Below, piece after piece: positions 9,325-22,440 of a DNA stretch of 64,000 bases. The stretch is from assembly GCF_000315625.1 (NCBI RefSeq), contig NW_005434665.1, forward strand, positions 136,969 through 200,968, written 5' to 3'. This stretch comes from Guillardia theta CCMP2712. Lineage: Eukaryota; Protista; Cryptophyta. Below the pieces are notes generated by a model, which worked only from the letters and a program-made list of their open reading frames with translations, ran no database searches and was not told the DNA's origin. The position numbers were made by a program, and so were the translations under genes. Position 1 is the first letter of the stretch. Every line of letters starts with the position of its first letter.

Positions 9325-10827
9325 TTAGTTTCCGAAGTTCATTGCGGCCTTGACGACCTCTAGGAATGTTTTATGGCTCCAAACATGACGGGCAGTAGTG
9401 ACTGGTCCCTCATACGCTTCATTTCTCTCTCTGGCCTCTTGACCAGCGACCGAACGCCCGCACCTGAACAAGTGCGTCATGGTTGAGAGTAGATGGTAGG
9501 AAGCGACTGAAGTCACCGTAGATGTGTCGTCTGCGAACAAATGCAATGCTTTCCATCCCGTTGTTGCTCTTCCTGTGAGGATTTCGAGACCTGACTAGTA
9601 GCTCAGAGACGTCAACAATCTACTTTCGCCCTTCACGGCGGAAAGAGCAAAGAGACATATGGGGTCTGCATCCGAAGAGGTTCTACCTCTGTCTCCGTGT
9701 TGGGCAGTCGCATACATGCTTTTTCTTGCGGTCATCAAACCAAAAGCCAAATCCTGCACATCAACGTCAAGATAACAAGTGTACGAAAGTCTCAGATGGT
9801 ACAATCACCGTGTCTTTTCTCGGCACAGGGTATGTAAACGTCGTCTCCCTTTCCCCACACCTTCAACGCATGTCAAACGCATCGTATGGACAGAAACTGA
9901 GCTAGCACTTGTCCTAGAGCATAAGATCCGATGGCTGCAACACGCAATGAGTAGCCGTCGACAGGGTTTCGCTCTGAAGGGAAATAGGTCAAGGGATACA
10001 GGTTGCTGCAAGGGCTTTCATGTACCGAACGCATCGATGGCAACATTGAAAGGGGATGCTCCCGAGCGGAGCAGGCTGTCAATAGACAAATTATCTCTAC
10101 AGTATTCAGTCTTGACGTTCTTGATGATGTATTCTATCATGAACTTGAGAATCGGATGCCCAGGTATACTTGAAAAGCACCAGTTCTGTAGTTTCAGATC
10201 GTGATGCTCCTCCCCGTACTTCCTTTGAAGCACCTTGGAAGCAAGTCTAGGCTGGTACCCCACGACCATGTCGTCGTCCGGAAGAAGCATCACATCCAGC
10301 GGCAGCTCGCAAGTGCAGTCGACCGTTGCGAACGTCCCGCCAAACTTGAACAGCATGAGATATGACCACAAGTCCTGTCGCGATTCTTGCCCGAGGGAGT
10401 CGTAGATCGTCAACAGCTCGGGATAGAACTCGTCTACCAAGTTCCTTGCCTGTCTGGGGCTACAGAGTGTAACCGAGTACTCTGGATTCTCGTTGTTCCA
10501 TGTCTCGGAATAGCGCTTGTGAAGCTTACTGAGAGGCATTTCCCAGTACACCTGCCATACCTTCCTCGGGATTTTAGGTTCTCTTTCCTCTTTCTTCTTT
10601 TCTGCCTTTTGAGCACGAGACAATCGCCCCTCTCCCTTGATGTTTTGTAGCATCTTCTTCATTTCTACTGGCATCCCGTGGCTAAACTCCGGCCGATAGT
10701 TCTTGTCCTGGTAGAACTCTGACGAGTCCCAGTGCTGCCACTCTGACTTATCAGCCCCATGCGCATCATAGAAGATCAGGCATGAGAGGATGATTGAACA
10801 GAGGCAAAGCTTTGTTTCTGAAGCCAT
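9325..10827 (-). CDS. Glycosyltransferase family 32 (Och1/DxD sugar-binding type) with N-terminal signal/anchor; 3' exons approximate
   Basis: KIPRKVWQVYW, TWNNENPEY, RQDLWSYLMLFKFGGTFATVD and LQNWCFSSIPGHPILK match the GT32 pattern. The N-terminus is hydrophobic. Confidence 0.75.
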
Positions 10828-11079
10828 GGATCGCACTCTATCAAGCGCCTGCTGCTCAGATCACGCTAGAGCGCTGCAAAGCACGAGCATGCACTGGTAC
10901 CCTGCTGACTAGCGGGACTCAACGCCATATGATCGAGGAGGGAGCGTCCAGCCATGGAGCTTGCAGTGGAGCCTCACTGCCATGACTTTCACGTGCTTCT
11001 CCTCCCTTGGCCCCCTCGTCCTGCCATCGTTTCTTGCAACCACACAAGCCGCATCGACAAACTTCCGATTGGACTGCCT

Positions 11080-11830
11080 TCGCCGCCGCCGGGGCCTCCA
11101 ACCGGCGGGCCGCCGGGCCGGGCCCGGGCCCGGCCGGCCGGGCCTCCCGGAGTCTGGGCAGTGAGCCTGCCGCCGACTCGGTCCCGGCGGGCGGCGCCGG
11201 CCCGCGGCCGGGCGGGGCCAGGCTTGACTAGGCCGTGACCGGCGTCCGGGTGCCCGGCATTATGCCCGGTGCCAGTCGAGGCTACCGTACGGCGCCGCCA
11301 GTACGGCCCCCCCGGGGGCCGGCCCGGCTAGTACTACGCGGGGCACGGTACGGTACCGGCGGCCGGGCCGCGGGGCCGCGGGGCCGGGCCGCTGCGCGGC
11401 GCGGCCGTAAGAGTGATCACCGCCGCCGATCGTTGAAGCCTGTGGACTATCAGGGCCGATCGTAGCGGCCCGGGGCCCCCGCTCCGGCGGCCGCCCGGGC
11501 CCCGGCCCGGCGGGGCCGCCCGCCCGGCCGCCCGCCCGGCGGGCGCGGCCGTGCGCACGGTCCGATCACAGTCGCGGCCCGGAGGCTGCGGCGGGCCCGG
11601 CGGGCCGCGCCGTCCGGCGCACTCAGGCCCGGCCCGATCGGACTCACTGAGTCAGCCACGCCGGGTCCGGCGGGCCGGGGACGGTCACCGTGGCACCGTG
11701 ACTGTCGGGTCACCGCCGGGGCTAGTACCGTCACACAGCGGCACCGGCGGTGTGACTCAGTACGAGGACAATGTGACTCAGCCGCCCTGCCACGCGCGGC
11801 AAGCCTCATCTATCCCGCCGGGCTGGACTC
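11080..11830. other. GC-rich intergenic island; similar islands at ~9135-9310, 13190-13700, 14960-15448, 20227-20480, 23100-23500, 30510-30560, 35185-35440, 45000-45310, 52930-53360
   Basis: Very high GC and CpG content with ccgg/ggcc/gactca/gtcac/cggtccgatc words, lying between genes. ORFs here are low-complexity Pro/Gly/Arg/Ala. Confidence 0.8.
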
Positions 11831-11988: not shown

Positions 11989-12657
11989 CTACAAGAAGAT
12001 AGGCTCCTCAGACCCATCAGTGTCCGAGGCGGTAGACGATTCTTCACGATGTTTGCACCCATCTGGTCTTCGCAAGACCTTCTTTCCACCCTTGCGGTTG
12101 AACTTGTACGGCCATTTTTCAACGCCCAATTGTCTGCACACCAGCTTCATCGTGGATTTGCCGATGCCGATCTTTGCTGACGCTACCTCCAGGCTCTCGT
12201 GGAAGTGCTCTGCTAGCAACTCGAGCGTGATCTCCACTGGTTTATCAGAATGGAAGTCAGCCTGTCGGGACTGTACCCTCACAACAGGTGCTTGGGGGAA
12301 GCGCTGCACAGGGCGAGAAGGAGGAGTGTTGCTGACAGATGAAGTATGTGCATGTACAATTGAGTTGTTCCTTGTCTCCGACGGCCAGTTGACCTGAAAA
12401 ACGTCTCCCATGATCTTGCTATTCATGATCATGGAAGGCTCAGGGCTCAGAAGATCACTCTGGTGCAAGGCAAAGAGATCCTGCATGAGGGAGGGAACGA
12501 ATGGTGAGTCTGAGAAAGAGTCGGCCAAGAGCGTAGTCGGGTCAGCCTCCGGCAAGGGGACTCGGAACCAATCATCGTCCAGGGTAGTTTGATCGAGGAA
12601 ATCGTCCGCAAAAGGTTCGCTGAGGAAGGGATGGTTGGCAAAGGAGATAGATTGCAT
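11989..12657 (-). CDS. RWP-RK domain transcription factor (intronless)
   Basis: ITLELLAEHFHESLEVASAKIGIGKSTMKLVCRQLGVEKWPYK fits the RWP-RK helix-turn-helix signature (KWPYK variant). Confidence 0.9.
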   Translation of the reverse strand: MQSISFANHPFLSEPFADDFLDQTTLDDDWFRVPLPEADPTTLLADSFSDSPFVPSLMQDLFALHQSDLLSPEPSMIMNSKIMGDVFQVNWPSETRNNSIVHAHTSSVSNTPPSRPVQRFPQAPVVRVQSRQADFHSDKPVEITLELLAEHFHESLEVASAKIGIGKSTMKLVCRQLGVEKWPYKFNRKGGKKVLRRPDGCKHREESSTASDTDGSEEPIFL

Positions 12658-12782: not shown

Positions 12783-15759
12783 GAGGGGGGAGTGCCCTTG
12801 CCAAAAGCTACAGTTTCCTCAGTTCATACTCAAGCGCTGCACTTTGGCACGGCCAACCGGGGCATTGTCCCGTGCATGTAGTAAAGAAAGCCCTGCAGTT
12901 AACCCCTAAAGGTTCATAGAAGGCTCCAGACGATTCGATTGGCGAAACGAGGCATGAAAGTGGCATGATGCTGACAGATTTGGATGCGCCTCGCACCTCA
13001 TCGCAGCAGAAAGCGTTAGGATGAGGTCCATGAGGTGGGAGAGCGGGGTGGTGACTTCTAGTAAAAGGAGGGGTCCCCCGCACTCCGAGTACTCCCCAGC
13101 CATGGAGATGCGCTCCGGTTATTGAAACATGATAGACTCTTGAATGGAGCCTGCACGGCTGTGGCTTGCACAGCAGCGGCATCATGATCTGGTGATCGGC
13201 GACCGGATCTCGTGTAGTAAACTGGAATGACTCATCCGGTGTCCGAGTCAGTACGGTCACTCAGTGGAGAGTCGGATCCGATGAAGATGATCAGCAGCGG
13301 CCACTGCCGGCCGACCGGGTGACGGACCCGGTGTCGGCCGGCCAGGCCCTGTGCGGCCCGTACCTTGAACTTTCCAAGAGTCAACTCGCCGCGGGACGGT
13401 GACTGCTGCTTTACTCAAAGTTAAGTGCAGCCTGTCACAAGTTCAACGGCCCGGCGGGCCGGCCGGGCGGCGGCCCGGACCGTGGCCGAGTCACACCGTC
13501 CTGAGTACGGGCCGGGCCGGTCCGATGGCAGACTCCGAACTGGCCGAGTCCGCGGGGCGCCCCACGGTGCCAGGGCACCCGGGACGGTCACTGCACGGCC
13601 ACTGGACCGGCCGCGATCTGCCCGGTGGCATGTGTTGTCGGTCGAGGCATCCGATGCAATCCACGGGGGCCGTGCCTTGCTCGGCCAACAGTGTCACCAA
13701 GTAATTTACTACAGGAATTTCCCAAAGGATGAGTCCTTTATAGGGTCCCAAGTACATCCCTATTTGAAACGATGTATCTCCAGACTAGCTTTACTCCTAT
13801 GAAGAAAACTCCAGAAGGATAACATGAGGTAATCATCCATGACGAAGTCGTGTAGTAGCCATGCAGGGACTGGGGCCCGTGCAAAGGCTGACAACCTCCC
13901 TCAGGTCCCGTGCCATGCTGAACCTGTCTGTGTACCTCCTATTCCGCCCCCTCTCCTACTGCCTCCCTTCCTCTACCTCTTCCCTCCACTCGGCCATTCG
14001 CCCCCATTACATCCAAGAAAGACACATTTACTCCATGTGTGCCATATTGTCTTGCTGCACTACATCCCTCTGACTCCCTCTGCCTCCTCTTGCTCTCTGC
14101 CTCTCTCTGTGCGTTTGCCTTTCCCTCCCCAGACCCAAAACTTTGCCACCGAACTTTCGCTTCCTTCCTTCTGACCCTCTGCCTTCCCACCCCCCCGGGC
14201 CTTCCTCTCCCATGATCGGCAGCTACAATTATGCTGCATTTTTCCTTTAAATTCACTAGTATGAAAATACCTTCAAAGCAATGATGGAAATGCTGTCGAT
14301 CAAACAGCTCACCTTTCATCTGGTCATGACAGGATGAACTTGGAGCTTAGCTCAATAAGAACTTGCGCTGGAATTTCTCTACTAAGAGGAACGCAGTGTG
14401 ACAAAAGGACGTCTATCTTTCTTTATTCTCACACAACCAACAAAACAAGCCAACACGCACTGGTGTAGCACAAACAGACGTGGCACACACACGAAAGGGG
14501 AAGATGACCATCGAGTTCTGACGAGGATGATCCTTTTCTACCTTCCAAGAAGGAGGCAGGAGTACCGTCTCTTGGCTGAGGGAAGCAGGAGTTGTGATCT
14601 CTCCTTGGAAGTTGACAAGCTTCCCTCCTCAGATGTTGAACATCCCTTCAGCTCTTCGTCCTTTTCAGCAGACTCACACTGGAGTAGAGTATCCTCAGGG
14701 CCTTAGTAATCCAGGAGAAGGCAGTTTCGAACACGAATGCGAGACAGCCAACTATCCTTTCCTTTCGCAGTATCATGAGTATTTTTTTACGCAAAGTTAA
14801 GTGAGTATCATCCGATTCTCGGACTCAGACTTTGAGTAAACGGACAGACAGTGACTCAGGCTTTTACTCAAAGTTAAGTCAGGCTACTCCGACTCTCGCT
14901 GTCTTTCAAGTTCTCTGATCTCAGTTTAACTTAAACTTGACTGCGACGGTGAGTAAAGAAGAGTCAACGGCGGCCGTCGGACGGTCCGATCACACAATGA
15001 CCGGCGACGGTCACCGTCTGAGTACGGTCCGATCATACGACTAGCGGCCGGAACTCGTCGGAAGCCTGGGCGGCGGGGAGCCTTCGGCGGAGCGGCTGGG
15101 GCTGCCACCGGTGACCTCGGACGGTGGCCGCCGGGGAACTCAGCGCGGCGGCTCAGTGAGACGGTGCCAGACTCAGAGTACCGTTGACCGTGAGTCGGAC
15201 TCCGATATCGGACCGTCGCGCCGCCCTACACCGGTGACACGGGCCGCCCCCGCCGGCGCCCGGGCCCGGCACCCGGGTGCCGTGATTTCAACTTAGTTTC
15301 GCGGCCGCGGCCGCCTGCCAGTCGGACTCCCGTACTCAGTACGGTGGCCCGCAGTGGCGGAGTCCGACTCGGCCCGGGCTCGGCCGGGCCGGGGGGCTCG
15401 GCCGGGCCGGGGGGCCCGGCCGGGCGGGGCCCCCGCCCGGCGGCCGGCCATACCGGGCAGTTTCCCACCGCTCCCGGCACCTCATTAGTAGTTCATCAAT
15501 TGGGGTACCTTCTTTGATGGGGGTGGGCTGCCTGGTTTGAATTTTTGTACCAGAAATGATTTTTGAGTAATTACATAAAAGTTGTTTTTGAGAGATTTTA
15601 GGATGTATATATGGTACAAAAGCTCCTGGCAACCCCTCTGAATGACCCGGATCCTGAGCACCCCTGTCGAAGCGGATGGCTTTTTGTGATAGCGTCGGGA
15701 GTGCATCCCCCCCTCAGCTCTGCAAGCATAAGCTGTCCTACTATTCGGGATAACGCTTC

Positions 15760-17031
15760 ATGAAGCTCTTCACCTTCTCGACGAGGTCTGGCGGCTTCCT
15801 AGTCCCAACCATCCCCCGCCCCTCCAACCAATCCCCCGTCCCTCCAACCATCCCCCGCCCCTCCAACATGCGTTCTCCCCGCATTTCAAGAGTTGCCGCC
15901 CAAGAAGGGAGGGAGAAAATCAGAAGGGTAACGCTAGTGATGGATGATGACGGGGAAACTCGGAAGCTTGAGAGAGATTGTGTACCTCAAATGATCAAAA
16001 TCCCTTTTTTCTTCTCTCGGATGTTATTTCAGGAAGACACTGACGCTCCTCAACTTGTGCTTTGTGGTAGTAGAGAATCGCAAAAGCGCGAATTTCTAAA
16101 ACCAAGTATGGGAATCTCGTTCTTGGACGTCAACAAACAACTCCGGCATGGTATGATACGAAAAGTAACCGAGAGTCATGTAGATGTTTACATTCTTTAC
16201 ACCAAGGATGTATTGAGACAAGTACAAACCAATGTCTTGAGTGGAGCTCGCTTGACGCAATTCATCTCTAGCCTTGATGATCATGAGTGCTTGCAGAGCA
16301 TCTACACGGACCAAGTTCCATTGCAAGACATTCAGGAAACTGTATTGCTGAACTATGCCCAATTCTCTGTAAGGACTATGCGGTGCAATAGCTTACTGAT
16401 CGTTGGGTGGTTGTACTTCGGAATGCCAGGACGCAAAAGTCAAGAATGTCAATTTTCTTACTTCAATACCATGACGGTTTTACCCCAGCAACTGAAAAAC
16501 TTTGTCGATGTCACTCTTCTGCTTCAACTTACAAATACCATTGAACTTCACTGGGAATTGGAATCGATCAGACGCAGTTTGAACAAGTGGCTGCAGCTGA
16601 GAGGAAAACCAAAGACTCGTTGTCTTGCTGCAGCAAAAGAAGCTCCCTTGAGATTCAATGTGGAGATACAGGATATGCGTGCAATGCTGTTCCTTTTTTC
16701 TGAGATTATGCAAACCGATCCCAATCTTGAAGCAGAGGCAATTAAGTGTTCCACTGTTAGCAAAAGTAGCCTGGTAACATGCTATTGGGTAATTCCTGAG
16801 ACATATCTAAGAACCTCTGTTTTGCAAAAGCACTTGACTATACCCTTTCATGATTCACAACTACGGTTGCCAAATGGGACTGGTAGTATTTACGTGGAGG
16901 GGCCTGTGACAATCAGCTTACGAAGACAGAAAACTGCTAATGAGGCTGGGTTGCTCATTTTCAGATTTTCTAAGATCTATCGTTACGGCTGGACTGGAAA
17001 AGAAATGTGGAGGTTTCCTCCTCTCAAATAG
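15760..17031 (+). CDS. Transposon partner protein (423 aa; alternative start ATG 15868) with a BAH-like segment
   Basis: Long uninterrupted ORF ending 90 bp from the transposase stop. The GMIRKV..HVDVYILYTKD...HECLQSIYTDQVPLQDIQETV segment resembles a BAH domain. Confidence 0.7.
   Translation: MKLFTFSTRSGGFLVPTIPRPSNQSPVPPTIPRPSNMRSPRISRVAAQEGREKIRRVTLVMDDDGETRKLERDCVPQMIKIPFFFSRMLFQEDTDAPQLVLCGSRESQKREFLKPSMGISFLDVNKQLRHGMIRKVTESHVDVYILYTKDVLRQVQTNVLSGARLTQFISSLDDHECLQSIYTDQVPLQDIQETVLLNYAQFSVRTMRCNSLLIVGWLYFGMPGRKSQECQFSYFNTMTVLPQQLKNFVDVTLLLQLTNTIELHWELESIRRSLNKWLQLRGKPKTRCLAAAKEAPLRFNVEIQDMRAMLFLFSEIMQTDPNLEAEAIKCSTVSKSSLVTCYWVIPETYLRTSVLQKHLTIPFHDSQLRLPNGTGSIYVEGPVTISLRRQKTANEAGLLIFRFSKIYRYGWTGKEMWRFPPLK
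15805..15867. repeat. Tandem 19-20 bp repeat CCAACC(A)ATCCCCCGCCCCT, ~3.3 copies
   Basis: Units at 15805-15823, 15824-15843 and 15844-15862, plus a partial copy ending just before ATG 15868. Confidence 0.9.
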
Positions 17032-17121
17032 TTTGTTTATAGCGGCCGGCTTACCAAGTCCATTTCAAGAGTCGTGGCAAGCTCATCCGCGCCAAAGATA
17101 GCACAGAAATAAAATTTTCAT

Positions 17122-19638
17122 TTATGTACTATTCAAAACCACTTGTAATTGTTTTGCTTTGCGTTCTAAATTGAACCAACTTACCATGCTCAGCGATGCT
17201 AAGGCGTAGTAAGACCAGGCTGCTTGGCGCGACTCCATCAAAGGTTCATGTTCTCCTTCACGGCGACGTTTCTTTGAGACGAATGCATTCACCTCTGGTT
17301 GGACTTGAAGATATGAAGGTCTTCCAAAATGTCTGTGGCGATTCTCGACGTTACTAATGTTCAGTAATCCAAGAGGGATCCCATATTGTACCAAACGGTC
17401 GTAGAATTGTTGGCCAATGTGCCCAACAAGGAGCGAGTGGAAGTAGAATGACTGCATCAAAGTAGGATCTCCAACCAGATCGATAATGTTGAGCATGAGA
17501 TTTCTCAATCTTACTGGAACGGTCAAACCGATTTCAAAATTCAGGTTTTCAATTTTTTCAATTTCTTGACACTTCAGCATGCTGCTTAGCAAGTCCCATT
17601 CTTGCATTACTTGAGTCCATTGTTCTCTGTCATCTGCATAGGCAGGATCGCTGTAAAGGGTATTGATAACCACTGCGGCATTTTTGACGAATCGGGCACA
17701 TTGTTCCCCGTTCAATTTTCTATTATGAGACTTCTCAGTGAATTGCACATTCACTCCTTGCTCTTGTAATCGAAGGTTGACTGTCGCGACCTTTCTCATC
17801 TGCGCCGCTTTCTCTTGGAGGCAACCAATAATCATGTTCGTCGTTCTTATGAAAGCATGAAACGAGCAACAAGCTGCTTCGCCGCTGCATCTGTCCATTT
17901 CAATGAGACGAATCACTGGGATCTTTGTTCCAATTTCCATGATCAATTCTGGGTCTTGCAGATAATTTTGCAGTCGAGTCTGATTTTCTTCAGCTAATAA
18001 CTCTTGGAATTCTCCTTCCGAGGTATCGAACATTCGTTGGAAAGCATCGGGACTTTTCAACATTCTGTTTAATTTCTTGATGCCCTCGGTAGACATGACT
18101 AGTCTTTCACACACTTGGGACAGAGTTTCGTCGCAAACGATTGTTTCGATTTCGAAATATTTGCCAGCCTTGTGATCTTTTAGGAGTTCGTTACAGTGGA
18201 GACAGAACTTACCCTCATTGTCGGACATTCCACCAATGCCGTACATATTCCATTGCCCTTGCAAATCAGATCTCTTGACGAACTCCACTTGGATAATCTT
18301 GTCAGGCTTACCACCTGCTAAAGTCTTTTGAAGTCCCCCGACTGCTTGATTGTTGTAGACGTGAATACCTTTCTCCTTCAAGAGATCAATAACTTGATCA
18401 TATGCAGCTCTCACAGTCCTCTGAAAAACCTCAGGACTGTCTCCATATGGAATGTAGGACATCGTCATAAGGCATGATGAACTTCGGACAAGCTTTTGCC
18501 AGAATTTCCATTCTTTCTTCGAACAGTCTACGCCGTAAGGGAAAATGGAAATGGTGACTTCAGTTGCCTTCTGAGGATTGCCAGCCGAGAAAGTCATTGT
18601 TGCACAGTCATAGTTGATCGTGATAACAAGGCGATGCTTCCCGTGAAGTTTGAAGATATCAATCCACTCTTCGACAAGTTGAAGGAGGCCGAGACAATGT
18701 GTCCCATCTGGCAAACAGAACAGTTTGAATCTTTCGCACATCGCATGCTTCTCTTGTACTCTAACCCGTGATATTTTTGGCATTGGAATAAAGCAGCCAG
18801 CCATGCTATCGTTTGCACGACAGAATCCTTGGTACTGCGATTTCGTTATACCGTTTGCTGTCAGGGCAACTGCTGCCTCTCGCGCGCTCGGCATCATTTG
18901 CCTGACCGCAGGTTTCAGGCAGTTTTGAAGCTCCTTATTCGTGGCAAGTTCATTTTTTATGACTGTCTTGAAGGCTTGACTGCTCAGAATGCCTTCAAAG
19001 AACGTAAGGCTATCGTATTTCGAAGTTTTGCACTTCTTCTGCTTTCGAGGCCCCTCGGCCGCTTCCTGTCCAGAGTCATCCTCACACTGGTGGTGAAATA
19101 GATCAGCAAAATGTCCCCATTTCACTCGACAATTGGCCTTGTGTGACGCAAAGTGCCGATCTACCTTCTTCGTGACCACATCTAGAAGGTCCTCATCAGT
19201 GTCACCCTGGATCTTCTTCAGAATCGCTGTTTTCACTTTTGGATCTTTGATAGAATCGTAACAAGCCGGAATTGGTTCATCAGAGTCGGAAATAATCCCT
19301 TCGCGTATGGCTTCATCCACATGATGACTAAAACCTCTCTGCTCCTCATACTCTTGTAAGATTCGAAGCAACAACTCAGGAGATCTACCTGCATCTCAGG
19401 TGTTACAAAGATTTGAATTATACAAATAATCTCTTTTCAAACCTATGGCCTTCAGGCAAGCATTGACATTAGGTTGTCCTTGCCATTTTCCTTGTTTATA
19501 GAGGAAGCCCGCTCGACTTGCCAGAGACTCCCAGGTGAGCAATTCATCGTCTTCCAGGGTGATCGTTTGTTTGCGACGTCTGCACGAACTTCCTTGCAAA
19601 GGTGGGGATGACGGATTTGATAGATTTGGTCCTGACAT
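17122..19638 (-). CDS. RAG1/Transib-like DDE transposase, ~820 aa, two exons (19638-19443 and 19388-17122)
   Basis: A 54-nt GT-AG intron (19389-19442) joins the 80-aa and 750-aa ORFs in frame (..KAIG|RSPELLLR..). Ordered motifs INYD, RSDL, FCLHC, SFHAF, KLNGEQ, YFH-x5-H and SNVEN parallel RAG1 D600, D708, C727/C730, H795, NG, YFH..H and E962. Confidence 0.8.
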
Positions 19639-22440
19639 GGTTAATCAATGTTTTAATGTTCAAAATGCCAGGCCAAATTTCAAGATCCCACTGACATGTC
19701 TCTCAACTTGTGCCGTGGCGACTGGCCTGTGGAAAAAATTCAAATCCCTGAAATAGGGATGGGTGGGGAACAGGGGGGACTACCCTACCCCCTATTTGTG
19801 AAAGCACTAGCAGAAAAGGACCCGGTGACTTCATTCTTGTACTAAACCCAGAAACACAGTACACAATGAATTTGAATCAGGCACAAAATATTTTCGAACC
19901 TTAGTATTGAATTTCTAAGTCTTTTCTACTGTGTTTCCAATTTATATTTATTTTATGATTATCCGTATCCTTCTAAAACGTTTTCGCAGCCTTAAAACAT
20001 GTCGTCTGTTAAAAGTTTCGAGGGGAGTGGGGTGGTCTTGAAGGTTACCGCCCATGACAATTCAAATACCCCACCCCCTATTACTAGATGATAATGGGGG
20101 TAAAAGGGTGCTTCTGTGCGAGGGTAAGTACCCGTATATGAGCAGTCAAAAGTACCGGTCATTGAAAGCGCTAATCAGTAATCCTGGAATTTCATATACC
20201 GGTGCAGCCCCCTGAATCCCAATATGGCGGCGGCGCCGGGTCCGTCAGTGGCAGCCTCAGACCGTGAGCGGCCCTTTCGGAACTTCGGAACTTCGGAACT
20301 TCGGTCGGAGAGTCAAAGTTCCGGTCCCGGACTGACCACTGAGGAGTCCGACGCCGGTCCGGCGGGCCGCGGCCGGGCTGGGCCCGGCGCCGCCGCCGCA
20401 GTGCCGCCTCGCCGACTCCGGGCGGCCGGCCGGGCATGTATACTGACTCTGTGAGACTATTTGAAGCGGCGGTGGCCCGGGCGTGACCCTTCCCAAAGTG
20501 ACAGAATTTCCCATCGTATCAGAGAGGGGTGGGGGTCTTGAATTTCTACTTGAATGTGACATGGGATTGAGAGAGTCCTCTATACCTATGATCTCAATTG
20601 GGAATACCTCTACCATATCGTAGGGGCATGCAGAAGAATGGTCTTGTTGAAGAATTAGAGGGTAGGGGGTGGGTGATTGACAGCAGTGCGAAGGGGCGGA
20701 ACCAGGGAGTAGGGGTCAGCTGTGTTTGCCAGTTCCACCGAGCCTTTGCGGGCGGGTAGGGTGGTATGGAAATAGTAATTAGAAGGGGTACAGGCAACAT
20801 TTGAGGGTAGATGCCATCAATAAAGAGGGTAGGGTACTCTGTGTTGACAGGGGTGTAGAAATTTCAGGAATGTTTTAGAATTGGTGTCGACTAGAGTTGA
20901 GCTCTTCGATTTCAAATTTCTCATAAGATGATTTCAAAGATAAACAGGATGTTATCCAAATTTATCCCAAATGGGTGGGGGTATGATGATGCAGGCAACG
21001 GAGGCGATAGGACATTGCAGATCGGCAATGCTGTAGGCTCCTTTCGCATCTGCTCGACGAAGAAAGAGACATAGGGAAGATGGAAAAGATGAATGAACAA
21101 TAGACGTCGAAGTGAACTCCGAGTGTTGAAACCTGAATGCTGAGCAATGTAGTCTGACGCATGGGTAATACATCCGGGGGGCAAATTGAAATCATTCCAA
21201 CTTCCATGAAATAGGCGGATAGTGAAACAGAGAATCCTACATCTATGTATTTCACAGTAGAACAAAGAGTAGTATGCATTTGTAGAATGTAGAGAGAGGC
21301 CATGAAATTAACCTGATGTGGAAGTGGAAGAGAAGAGGTAACTAAACCAACCAGAATCGGTCGTGAGAGATTTTCGTCGTGGTTGCGAGATCAGGAGAGA
21401 ATAGTTGGGCAGTGAACTTCAACTGCTTATGCTTTGAATACCACAGGAACAAACATTTGAAGCAAGTGAAGAGGTTGAATTTAGTAAATAGCCATCCCCT
21501 GCAGGTGTGGTCGTCTAGTACGGTTGTGAGGTTTTAGAGCATTGATTTGAATTCGCCAAGATGCTGTTTTCAACTCGATTGAACGTAATTGTGCAGGTCA
21601 TGAGAACAAAACTCGAAGGTATTCCAGAACCGCCAAGTGGGTATGTGCCTCCCCTTGGCGCTTCGCACAGAACGTGGACCAACATCTACAAGAACAAGGG
21701 AAGGATTGACTACTGCGTATCTCAATTCTCTGTGAGTGAACGTCTTTGTGCTTCTTGCATTGTTAGTGACAGGATTGACAGTACCTCACTAACCGCTTGA
21801 AGTGCGTGGCAAAGGTATGTTTCTCTTGTTTGCAATAACCAATCAATTCGTCCTAACGACGTCTTCGCAGCTCACCGGCGGTCCGTTCTTGGACTAGAAG
21901 ATCGTATTGAGAACGAAAAACATGGTATGTGTACCCGTCAGGCGGTAAAATACGAATACATATCCCAACCAGTGGGAGTTACGGTTTCGAAATGCAAACT
22001 AGTCATGGATACGTAAATGCATACTTGAGGTCATTTTCTTCACACATGTTGATTCATACTCTGCATAGTGCATAAGATTGCAGAATATTCGGAACATGTT
22101 GACTCTTGCTATGCCAACCATACAACTCTAACCCGGGGATCCCTTGTCTCCTTGAAATCGATGAATTCATGAGGAAGGGACTTGACACACATGCGTGTCC
22201 AGAGAGTAGCCAGGAACCAGCATTCCGAATTCAACTTCTTTCATGCATGATCGGTACTTCGATGCAGCACAAGATGTCGTGATTTCCAGTTTATTGGATA
22301 CAAATAGCAAACAGGAAAGGCGTAAGGCCCTTTACAGGCTCGACCAACACTGTCAGTGTTAGACAAGAACATCCTTTTGTACAAAGACAACAAGGATCGG
22401 TGCTAGTCGTGTCTGTGCATGACGACTAGTCATGACTCAC

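Follow-up and report, generated by a model that had tools for sequence, protein, structure and literature searches.

The forward-strand gene ORF2 of the window (the whole 64,000-nucleotide stretch of Guillardia theta CCMP2712 DNA analysed here) belongs to a mobile element in which it is, with high confidence, the genuine and conserved partner of a transposase gene, and residues ~92‒237 of its product very probably adopt the fold of a bromo-adjacent homology (BAH) domain. Since no sequence method detects BAH in it, we describe the modelled domain as BAH or BAH-like and highly divergent; on sequence grounds we do not count it among PF01426. The transposase gene, ORF1, is probably RAG1/Transib-like, and the transposon seems to have acquired a chromatin-type partner of its own, independently of RAG2. 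The element brings a chromatin-type module borne on a transposon into a RAG-like architecture of two genes, with a partner that is not homologous to RAG2. The coordinates of the element and of its parts are collected in Table 1.

Table 1 Features of the element, its two genes and the flanks of its copies. Positions are those of the window.
Feature	Position	Strand	Size or GC content	Basis or remark
Whole mobile element	15449-20226		~4.78 kb, GC 44.5%	Decayed copies and contig breaks
Left terminus, CATACCGGG	15449-15457	+		Copy comparison and run contig
Right terminus (CATATTGGG)	20218-20226			Left terminus matches its reverse complement at 7/9
ORF2, partner gene	15760-17031	+	423 aa	Open reading frame list; intact
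N-terminal extension of ORF2	15760-15867	+	36 codons	Not seen in other copies
Predicted BAH-fold domain of ORF2, residues ~92-237	16033-16470	+		AlphaFold2 model and structural searches; includes 16090-16420
Block 1, GMIRKVTESHVDVYILYTKD, residues 131-150	16150-16209	+		Two predicted β strands; ends I-L-Y at the BAH W-F/Y-Y position
Block 2, HECLQSIYTDQVPLQDIQETVLL, residues 175-197	16282-16350	+		Family motif C-x-Q-S-x-Y-x-D; spacing like BAH E-L-F-x-S...D
C-terminal α/β domain of ORF2, residues 238-423	16471-17028	+		Secondary structure of the model
ORF1 exon 2, probable RAG1/Transib-like transposase	17122-19388	-		Open reading frame; invariant residues; language-model clusters
ORF1 intron, GT..AG	19389-19442	-	54 nt	Spliced joint in RNA reads and contig
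ORF1 exon 1, N-terminal part	19443-19638	-	65 codons	Aligns to the N-terminus of a Guillardia theta homologue from residue 12
Left flank of copy L005/L006			689 nt, GC 62-73%	
Right flank of copy L005/L006			88 nt, GC 49%	
Left flank of copy L004			100 nt, GC 41%	
Right flank, run contig leaving at 20226			30 nt, GC about 53%	

The extent of the element was derived from its other copies. Similarity to three decayed copies (L004, L005 and L002, the last being one contig with L006) begins at 15449 or 15451 and stops at 20223, with unrelated flanks beyond. One contig from the sequencing runs begins exactly at 15449, and another departs from the window sequence after 20226. Since the decayed copies with their different flanks and the breaks of the run contigs coincide at these positions, the ends of the element are placed at 15449 and 20223/20226. 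The decayed copies come from lake or groundwater-type metagenomes; their identity is 89‒95% to the window and ~99% among themselves, and they carry deletions of 16350‒16866 (L005 and L002) and 18261‒19387 (L004). The three copies, with common ends and different flanks, show that the unit is mobile, and a multi-copy family with decayed copies in different flanks rules out that ORF2 is a host gene and not a transposon gene. The two termini, CATACCGGG and CATATTGGG, form a weak terminal inverted repeat, where a Transib element would be expected to have repeats of the CAC type. A 5-bp target-site duplication is a criterion of the Transib superfamily (PMC1131882). No convincing duplication of 5 bp was found at the window copy or at the L005/L006 copy; CCGGC and GCGGC, which border the element in the window, agree at four of five positions but are of low complexity.

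ORF1 lies tail-to-tail with ORF2 on the opposite strand, where an unspliced frame of 750 residues (17122‒19374, reverse strand) ends 90 nt downstream of ORF2. Its spliced product has 820 residues and is free of stops, and the splice joint is carried by three RNA-seq reads (X23) and by a contig of run X7 at a word depth of 480. A break of ORF1 by the TGA at 19396‒19398 is ruled out, as this stop is inside the spliced 54-nt intron. Residues D256, D370, C391, C394, C503, H506, H646, H652 and E677 are invariant in five ORF1 homologues, and their order (D, D, CxxC, CxxH, HxxxxxH, E) is what we take to be that of D600, D708, C727, C730, H937, H942 and E962 of RAG1. In the language-model atlas, the clusters nearest to ORF1 carry PF26100 RAG1_RNase_H and PF26101/PF26104, with RAG1_ZnC2 and RAG1_ZnH2 among the names, at scores of 0.93‒0.96 and with 171‒192 shared features. 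Pfam and PDB profiles give no match of ORF1 to RAG1 or Transib; the language-model features and the order of the motifs are what make ORF1 a probable RAG1/Transib-like transposase.

The arrangement of the two genes is conserved well beyond this element. An ORF2-like gene followed immediately by an ORF1-like gene on the opposite strand occurs at six further loci, with identities of 21‒50% that drop in parallel for the two genes. Three of these loci are on metagenome contigs: L001, at 50%/44% identity (ORF2/large ORF), L007, at 28%/26%, and the more divergent L009. The other three (L008, L010 and L011) are on separate Guillardia theta scaffolds. A metagenome scan for loci with a 6-sequence alignment returned four. 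ORF2 had been proposed to be a partner ORF, and the same convergent pair in the window and at the six further loci bears this out.

A word-index search with ORF2 returned one relative, P0001, of 433 residues and 50% identity, and a profile search across 1.84 billion representatives returned 22, giving a family of 23 members including ORF2. The relatives that bear names are all cryptophyte entries labelled 'hypothetical protein', namely several paralogues of Guillardia theta CCMP2712, entries from the Hanusia phi transcriptome and one MMETSP transcript. Against the 50% identical relative at L001, the dN/dS of ORF2 is 0.21 overall and 0.28 over the BAH region (residues 92‒237), with dS there near saturation, and for L001 against its close relative L003 the ratio is 0.32. 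As judged from these ratios (dN/dS ~0.2‒0.3), purifying selection acts on ORF2. The conserved start of the protein is probably Met37 at 15868, since the relatives in protein alignment and the other copies in DNA similarity align only from this position. Upstream of it, a family of direct repeats (D2) with Pro-rich units of ~20 nt occupies 15805‒15867 inside the N-terminal extension, and DNA comparison found no similarity to 15666‒15867 in the other copies of the element.

The fold of ORF2 was examined on a template-free AlphaFold2 model (m144eb95d9007) built on the shallow alignment of the 23-member family. The mean pLDDT is 73 and the pTM is 0.72, with the five models within 1.2 units of each other, and over most of residues 110‒240 the pLDDT reaches ~83‒94 (about 90). 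With an alignment of only two sequences, the pLDDT is 31.6. When the model was searched against the PDB with Foldseek, each of the first 50 hits was a BAH domain, with E-values from 1.7e-5 to 1.7e-3. Those of Sir3, Orc1, PBRM1, AIPP3, ASI1, SHL, EBS, DNMT1, MET1, DIM2 and MTA1 are among them, and the TM-scores are modest (0.35‒0.51 by target). VIA-align, an aligner independent of Foldseek, was run exhaustively on 48,161 representative chains and placed BAH domains at ranks 1‒19 (Z 11.5‒6.8), with superpositions of ~120 residues at an rmsd of ~3 Å over the model range ~92‒237; the next fold, Tudor, follows at Z 5.2 with 54 residues. Re-alignment of the Foldseek list with VIA-align gives 94 chains at Z of at least 8, led by EBS and SHL (Z 11.7, rmsd 2.8‒3.0 Å, 117‒120 residues). 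A shape search of the ESM-Atlas with the same model carries PF01426 on most of the named rows.

Sequence-based methods are blind to this fold. Pfam gives no match on ORF2 at E ≤ 1, PF01426 included, and at E ≤ 10 none of the 23 family members matches BAH, Tudor, PHD or Kelch; the sole marginal match is KOW6_SPT5 (E 0.024), in two members. No BAH chain was returned from the PDB by phmmer and hmmsearch with queries of 1, 2 or 23 sequences of the family, and the language-model atlas has no usable match for the whole of ORF2. This blindness, the modest TM-scores and an alignment of only 13‒18 sequences per column would fit a resemblance that is an artefact, in which an SH3/Tudor-like barrel of generic type, or a domain that was modelled wrongly, meets a chance motif match. 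Such an artefact is very improbable, for BAH chains align over ~120 residues at Z 8.5‒11.7 against ~55 residues and Z ≤ 5.2 for Tudor, PWWP and KOW barrels, the five models agree at a domain pLDDT of ~90, and an aligner independent of Foldseek gives the same result. The BAH domain suggested for this gene in the original prediction thus holds at the level of the fold, in the AlphaFold2 model, the Foldseek search and the two VIA-align searches, while the expected PF01426 profile match is absent.

The two peptides on which that suggestion was based are present, upon in-frame translation of 16090‒16420 on the forward strand, at exactly 16150‒16209 and 16282‒16350. In the 23-sequence alignment, block 1 is conserved at G131, I133, V143, Y144, L146, Y147 and K149, and block 2 at C177, Q179, S180, Y182 and D184. 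Conservation at the pattern positions of the two blocks is at least 70% and mostly at least 80%, with 13‒18 sequences per alignment column. In this alignment the positions of the two blocks rank with the most strongly conserved ones in the 23-member family, beyond chance. The family consensus reads V143-Y-I-L-Y147-x-K149 and E176-C-L-Q-S180-x-Y-x-D184..I191, and by eye block 1 resembles what we take to be the BAH consensus v.v.W-F/Y-Y-R-P, while the spacing of block 2 resembles that of E-L-F-x-S-x3-D...I. Two predicted helices, 149‒156 and 162‒171, sit between the blocks in the model. Further conserved positions are P82, L113, P115, G118, F121, D123, R129, G216, W217, F220 and F235, and a basic N-terminal stretch and an hPLCFS motif are also conserved across the family.

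Known BAH domains, namely those of EBS/SHL, ORC1/ORC1b, Sir3, DNMT1, PBRM1 and AIPP3, share the fold of the ORF2 model (Z 9‒11.7, rmsd 2.8‒3.6 Å, 117‒133 residues), and by eye their two signature blocks seem to recur in ORF2 in like order and at like distances. On the other hand, identity in the superpositions is 6‒15%, and ORF2 differs in the missing PF01426 match, in an Ile in place of the cage Trp, in the two helices between the blocks and in being encoded by a transposon instead of a host chromatin gene. BAH domains are nearly confined to chromatin proteins, and every BAH match from Foldseek and VIA-align bears a title in keeping with this.

In the BAH domains that read methyl-lysine (ORC1, EBS/SHL, AIPP3, BAHCC1 and TNRC18), the aromatic cage is built from a Tyr and from the Trp and Tyr of a W-x-Y motif. 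The cage of ORC1, EBS and AIPP3 thus includes the Trp of W-F/Y-Y. In our by-eye alignment of ORF2 to BAH domains, this position is Ile145, and most family members have I, L, V or M there; Trp is found in three of 18 members (P0011, P0020 and P0023, which read WFYRK or WLYRK). Since the Trp position is Ile145, a canonical methyl-lysine cage is unlikely in this copy of ORF2. R129 is the probable counterpart of the first cage position. The Tyr that follows the Trp position, Y147, is invariant across the family, and together with Y182 and W217, which vary little or not at all, it might line a non-canonical pocket. Given what seems an incomplete version of the canonical aromatic cage, this domain would be more likely to contact the surface of the nucleosome or an unmodified histone tail than methyl-lysine. 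Such contacts are made by Sir3, yeast Orc1 and plant ORC1b. The BAH domains of DNMT1 and MTA1, in turn, act largely as protein scaffolds, and the fold alone does not show function. From the fold alone, a role of the ORF2 domain in contacting chromatin is a tentative reading, and we hold it at slightly less than an even chance.

In our view, ORF2 may serve as accessory protein to a DNA transposon of the Transib superfamily that carries two genes and resides in cryptophyte algae. It would comprise a short basic N-terminal region, the divergent BAH-fold domain (~92‒237) and the C-terminal α/β domain. The C-terminal domain may dock on the transposase and the BAH domain may contact nucleosomes or histone tails, and such contact would serve to tether the transposase to chromatin or to license it there. 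Comparable jobs are done by the PHD finger of RAG2 for RAG1 and by chromodomains for the integrases of chromoviruses. Taken as a whole, from BAH contact to docking, this explanation has about an even chance of being right. The fold searches barely probe the C-terminal domain, and the language-model atlas gives no usable match for residues 238‒423; WLxxRG and GSIYxEGP are among the conserved motifs of this domain.

Alternatively, ORF2 could be an obligatory structural cofactor, like the core of RAG2, in which the BAH domain is a scaffold for protein-protein or protein-DNA contacts and reads no chromatin. The absence of the canonical cage Trp from most family members is consistent with such a cofactor, as is the strict co-inheritance of the gene pair across deep divergence. 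In several superpositions some C-terminal strands align with the BAH core, with model ranges reaching 335‒392, which suggests one integrated body, and the scaffold BAH domains of DNMT1 and MTA1 score like reader BAH domains (Z 9.5‒11). A possible pocket lined by the conserved Y147, Y182 and W217 would speak for reading instead, and Transib transposase is reported to act alone (PMC4840297), so that a cofactor would not be a general need of the superfamily. We regard a purely structural role as doubtful, though it is the alternative that survives best.

In a second alternative, ORF2 would act like the second protein of PIF/Harbinger elements, recognising the ends and/or carrying the transposase to the nucleus through its N- and C-terminal regions. 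The conserved basic stretch and hPLCFS motif, the C-terminal domain without an assigned fold and the weakness of the terminal inverted repeats, which makes an extra specificity factor plausible, would fit this role. We nevertheless consider it improbable, for Pfam finds no DNA-binding domain in ORF2 or the 23 members, and the sole assigned fold, BAH, is not that of a sequence-specific DNA binder. PIF/Harbinger elements are two-ORF DNA transposons that encode a transposase and a Myb-like (Myb/SANT DNA-binding) protein. They resemble the present element as DDE transposons that need, or at least carry, a second conserved protein-coding gene, and they differ in the superfamily of the transposase and in a partner of Myb/SANT and not BAH type.

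The accessory protein that we favour invites comparison with RAG2. In the RAGL (ProtoRAG) transposons, the RAG2 or RAG2-like gene is likewise a second gene convergent with a RAG1/Transib-type transposase gene in one mobile unit, and both RAG2-like proteins and ORF2 carry a domain of a type typical of histone readers. RAG2, however, consists of a six-bladed kelch β-propeller and a C-terminal PHD finger, whereas ORF2 appears to have a BAH fold in its N-terminal half followed by the α/β domain. Pfam finds neither Kelch nor PHD in ORF2 or the 23 members, and no propeller is among the fold-search matches, which barely probe the C-terminal half. In the model, long helices (242‒281 and 307‒319) lie beside the BAH core, and the C-terminal half holds only a few scattered Cys and His residues. 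With neither kelch nor PHD features in ORF2, nothing points to homology with RAG2, and we reject it. The earlier analogy with the RAG2 PHD is thereby restricted to architecture, that is, to a convergent gene pair and a domain of reader type, and perhaps to role, and does not extend to Kelch or PHD.

In RAGL transposons, the partner of RAG1L is a RAG2L of kelch-PHD type, and one such pair is reported from the alga Aureococcus (PMC9435367; PMC10462144). Transib transposons are stated to encode no RAG2-like protein (PMC10462144). Transposable elements are known to have captured readers of the Chromo and PHD types (bioRxiv 10.1101/2021.11.30.470311). In chromovirus integrases and other captures, the readers are mostly in-frame Chromo or PHD fusions to the integrase or transposase and were found via Pfam; ORF2, unlike these, is a separate gene of a DNA transposon with a BAH fold that Pfam does not see. 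Surveys of chromatin-domain capture by transposons that are based on Pfam miss divergent cases like ORF2. Within the library searched, Transib is mentioned in no paper together with 'bromo-adjacent homology' or Guillardia, and together with 'cryptophyte' in general reviews only.

Central to how V(D)J recombination originated is the question of how RAG1 grew dependent on a chromatin-reading partner, and here an algal Transib-like lineage carries a different conserved partner with what is very probably a chromatin-type fold. If the two proteins cooperate, this type of transposase would have been paired with a chromatin-reading module more than once, which would point to a selective pressure. The more far-reaching idea is that, independently of RAG1-RAG2, a cryptophyte Transib evolved a two-subunit transposase in which a BAH reader, brought by a non-homologous partner where RAG2 has its PHD, steers or licenses integration at particular chromatin, possibly GC-rich islands. 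A protist would then have converged on a 'RAG-like' solution, and we consider this idea rather unlikely in this full form.

The insertion sites at hand bear on the last part of that idea. The element is flanked by GC-rich DNA (64‒92%), and GC islands cover ~7% of the window; once the element is removed, flanks of at least 64% GC on both sides, such as are found here, occur at only 2.3‒3.7% of window positions. The flanks of the other copies are mixed (Table 1). The observation in the original prediction that this copy sits inside a GC island stands, while targeting of islands by ORF2 is unsupported: the sites are too few and from different organisms, and they give a hint of it at best.

Both genes of the element are transcribed. 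In the runs X6 and X7, which are probably RNA, both reach word depths of tens to hundreds, against 4 or less at the non-coding ends, and these contigs give neither level nor strand. A run on record as RNA, of which 6% was read, holds a few ORF2-sense reads at a depth of ~1, and the transcriptomes of Hanusia phi and of MMETSP contain relatives of ORF2. With an intact and transcribed element, and with relatives in the culturable and sequenced Guillardia theta, the proposed cooperation of transposase and BAH-type partner is open to experimental test.

The sole in-frame stop codon of the transposase gene ORF1 (TGA, 19396-19398) lies inside its intron, and RNA reads show that this intron is removed by splicing. 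Another strain or copy has TGG at this codon, and there the reading frame stays open even without splicing. Upstream of ORF1, the contigs of two sequencing runs lack a 109-nt stretch. Its ends are non-canonical (CA..CG), which makes an indel difference between copies a likelier explanation for the skip than an intron.

Element derivatives with internal deletions, which take out parts of ORF1 and/or the BAH-fold partner gene ORF2, are present among the run contigs and the metagenome copies. Such losses would be expected of non-autonomous derivatives. The metagenome contigs L005 and L006 overlap by 878 nt at 99.8% identity and carry an identical internal deletion, and they look like the two ends of a single element copy. 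Although a target-site duplication is expected for a Transib-type element, none was found in the flanks of this copy (L005 1-689; L006 4117-4204).

Nine GC-rich islands of the kind listed below cover ~7% of the window, with GC as high as 92%. Their low-complexity sequences are similar to each other and built in part of an 18-nt unit, GGGCTCGGCCGGGCCGGG, tandemly repeated at 15376-15429. Elsewhere in the window, one ORF encodes an RWP-RK domain, a transcription-factor domain of the plant, alga and protist type.

Features of the window (window coordinates)
Feature	Position	Strand	Remark
ORF1 intron	19389-19442	-	54 nt, GT..AG
109-nt stretch	19877-19987		upstream of ORF1; missing from contigs of two runs
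Internal deletions of element derivatives	16774-18343, 17194-18542, 16350-16866, 18261-19387
GC-rich islands	15050-15448, 20227-20440; also 10941-11820, 13301-13700
ORF with possible glycosyltransferase DXD sugar-binding region	10018-10836	-	weak match to PF04488, E 9.8e-6
ORF with RWP-RK domain	11989-12657	-	Pfam E 5.7e-13
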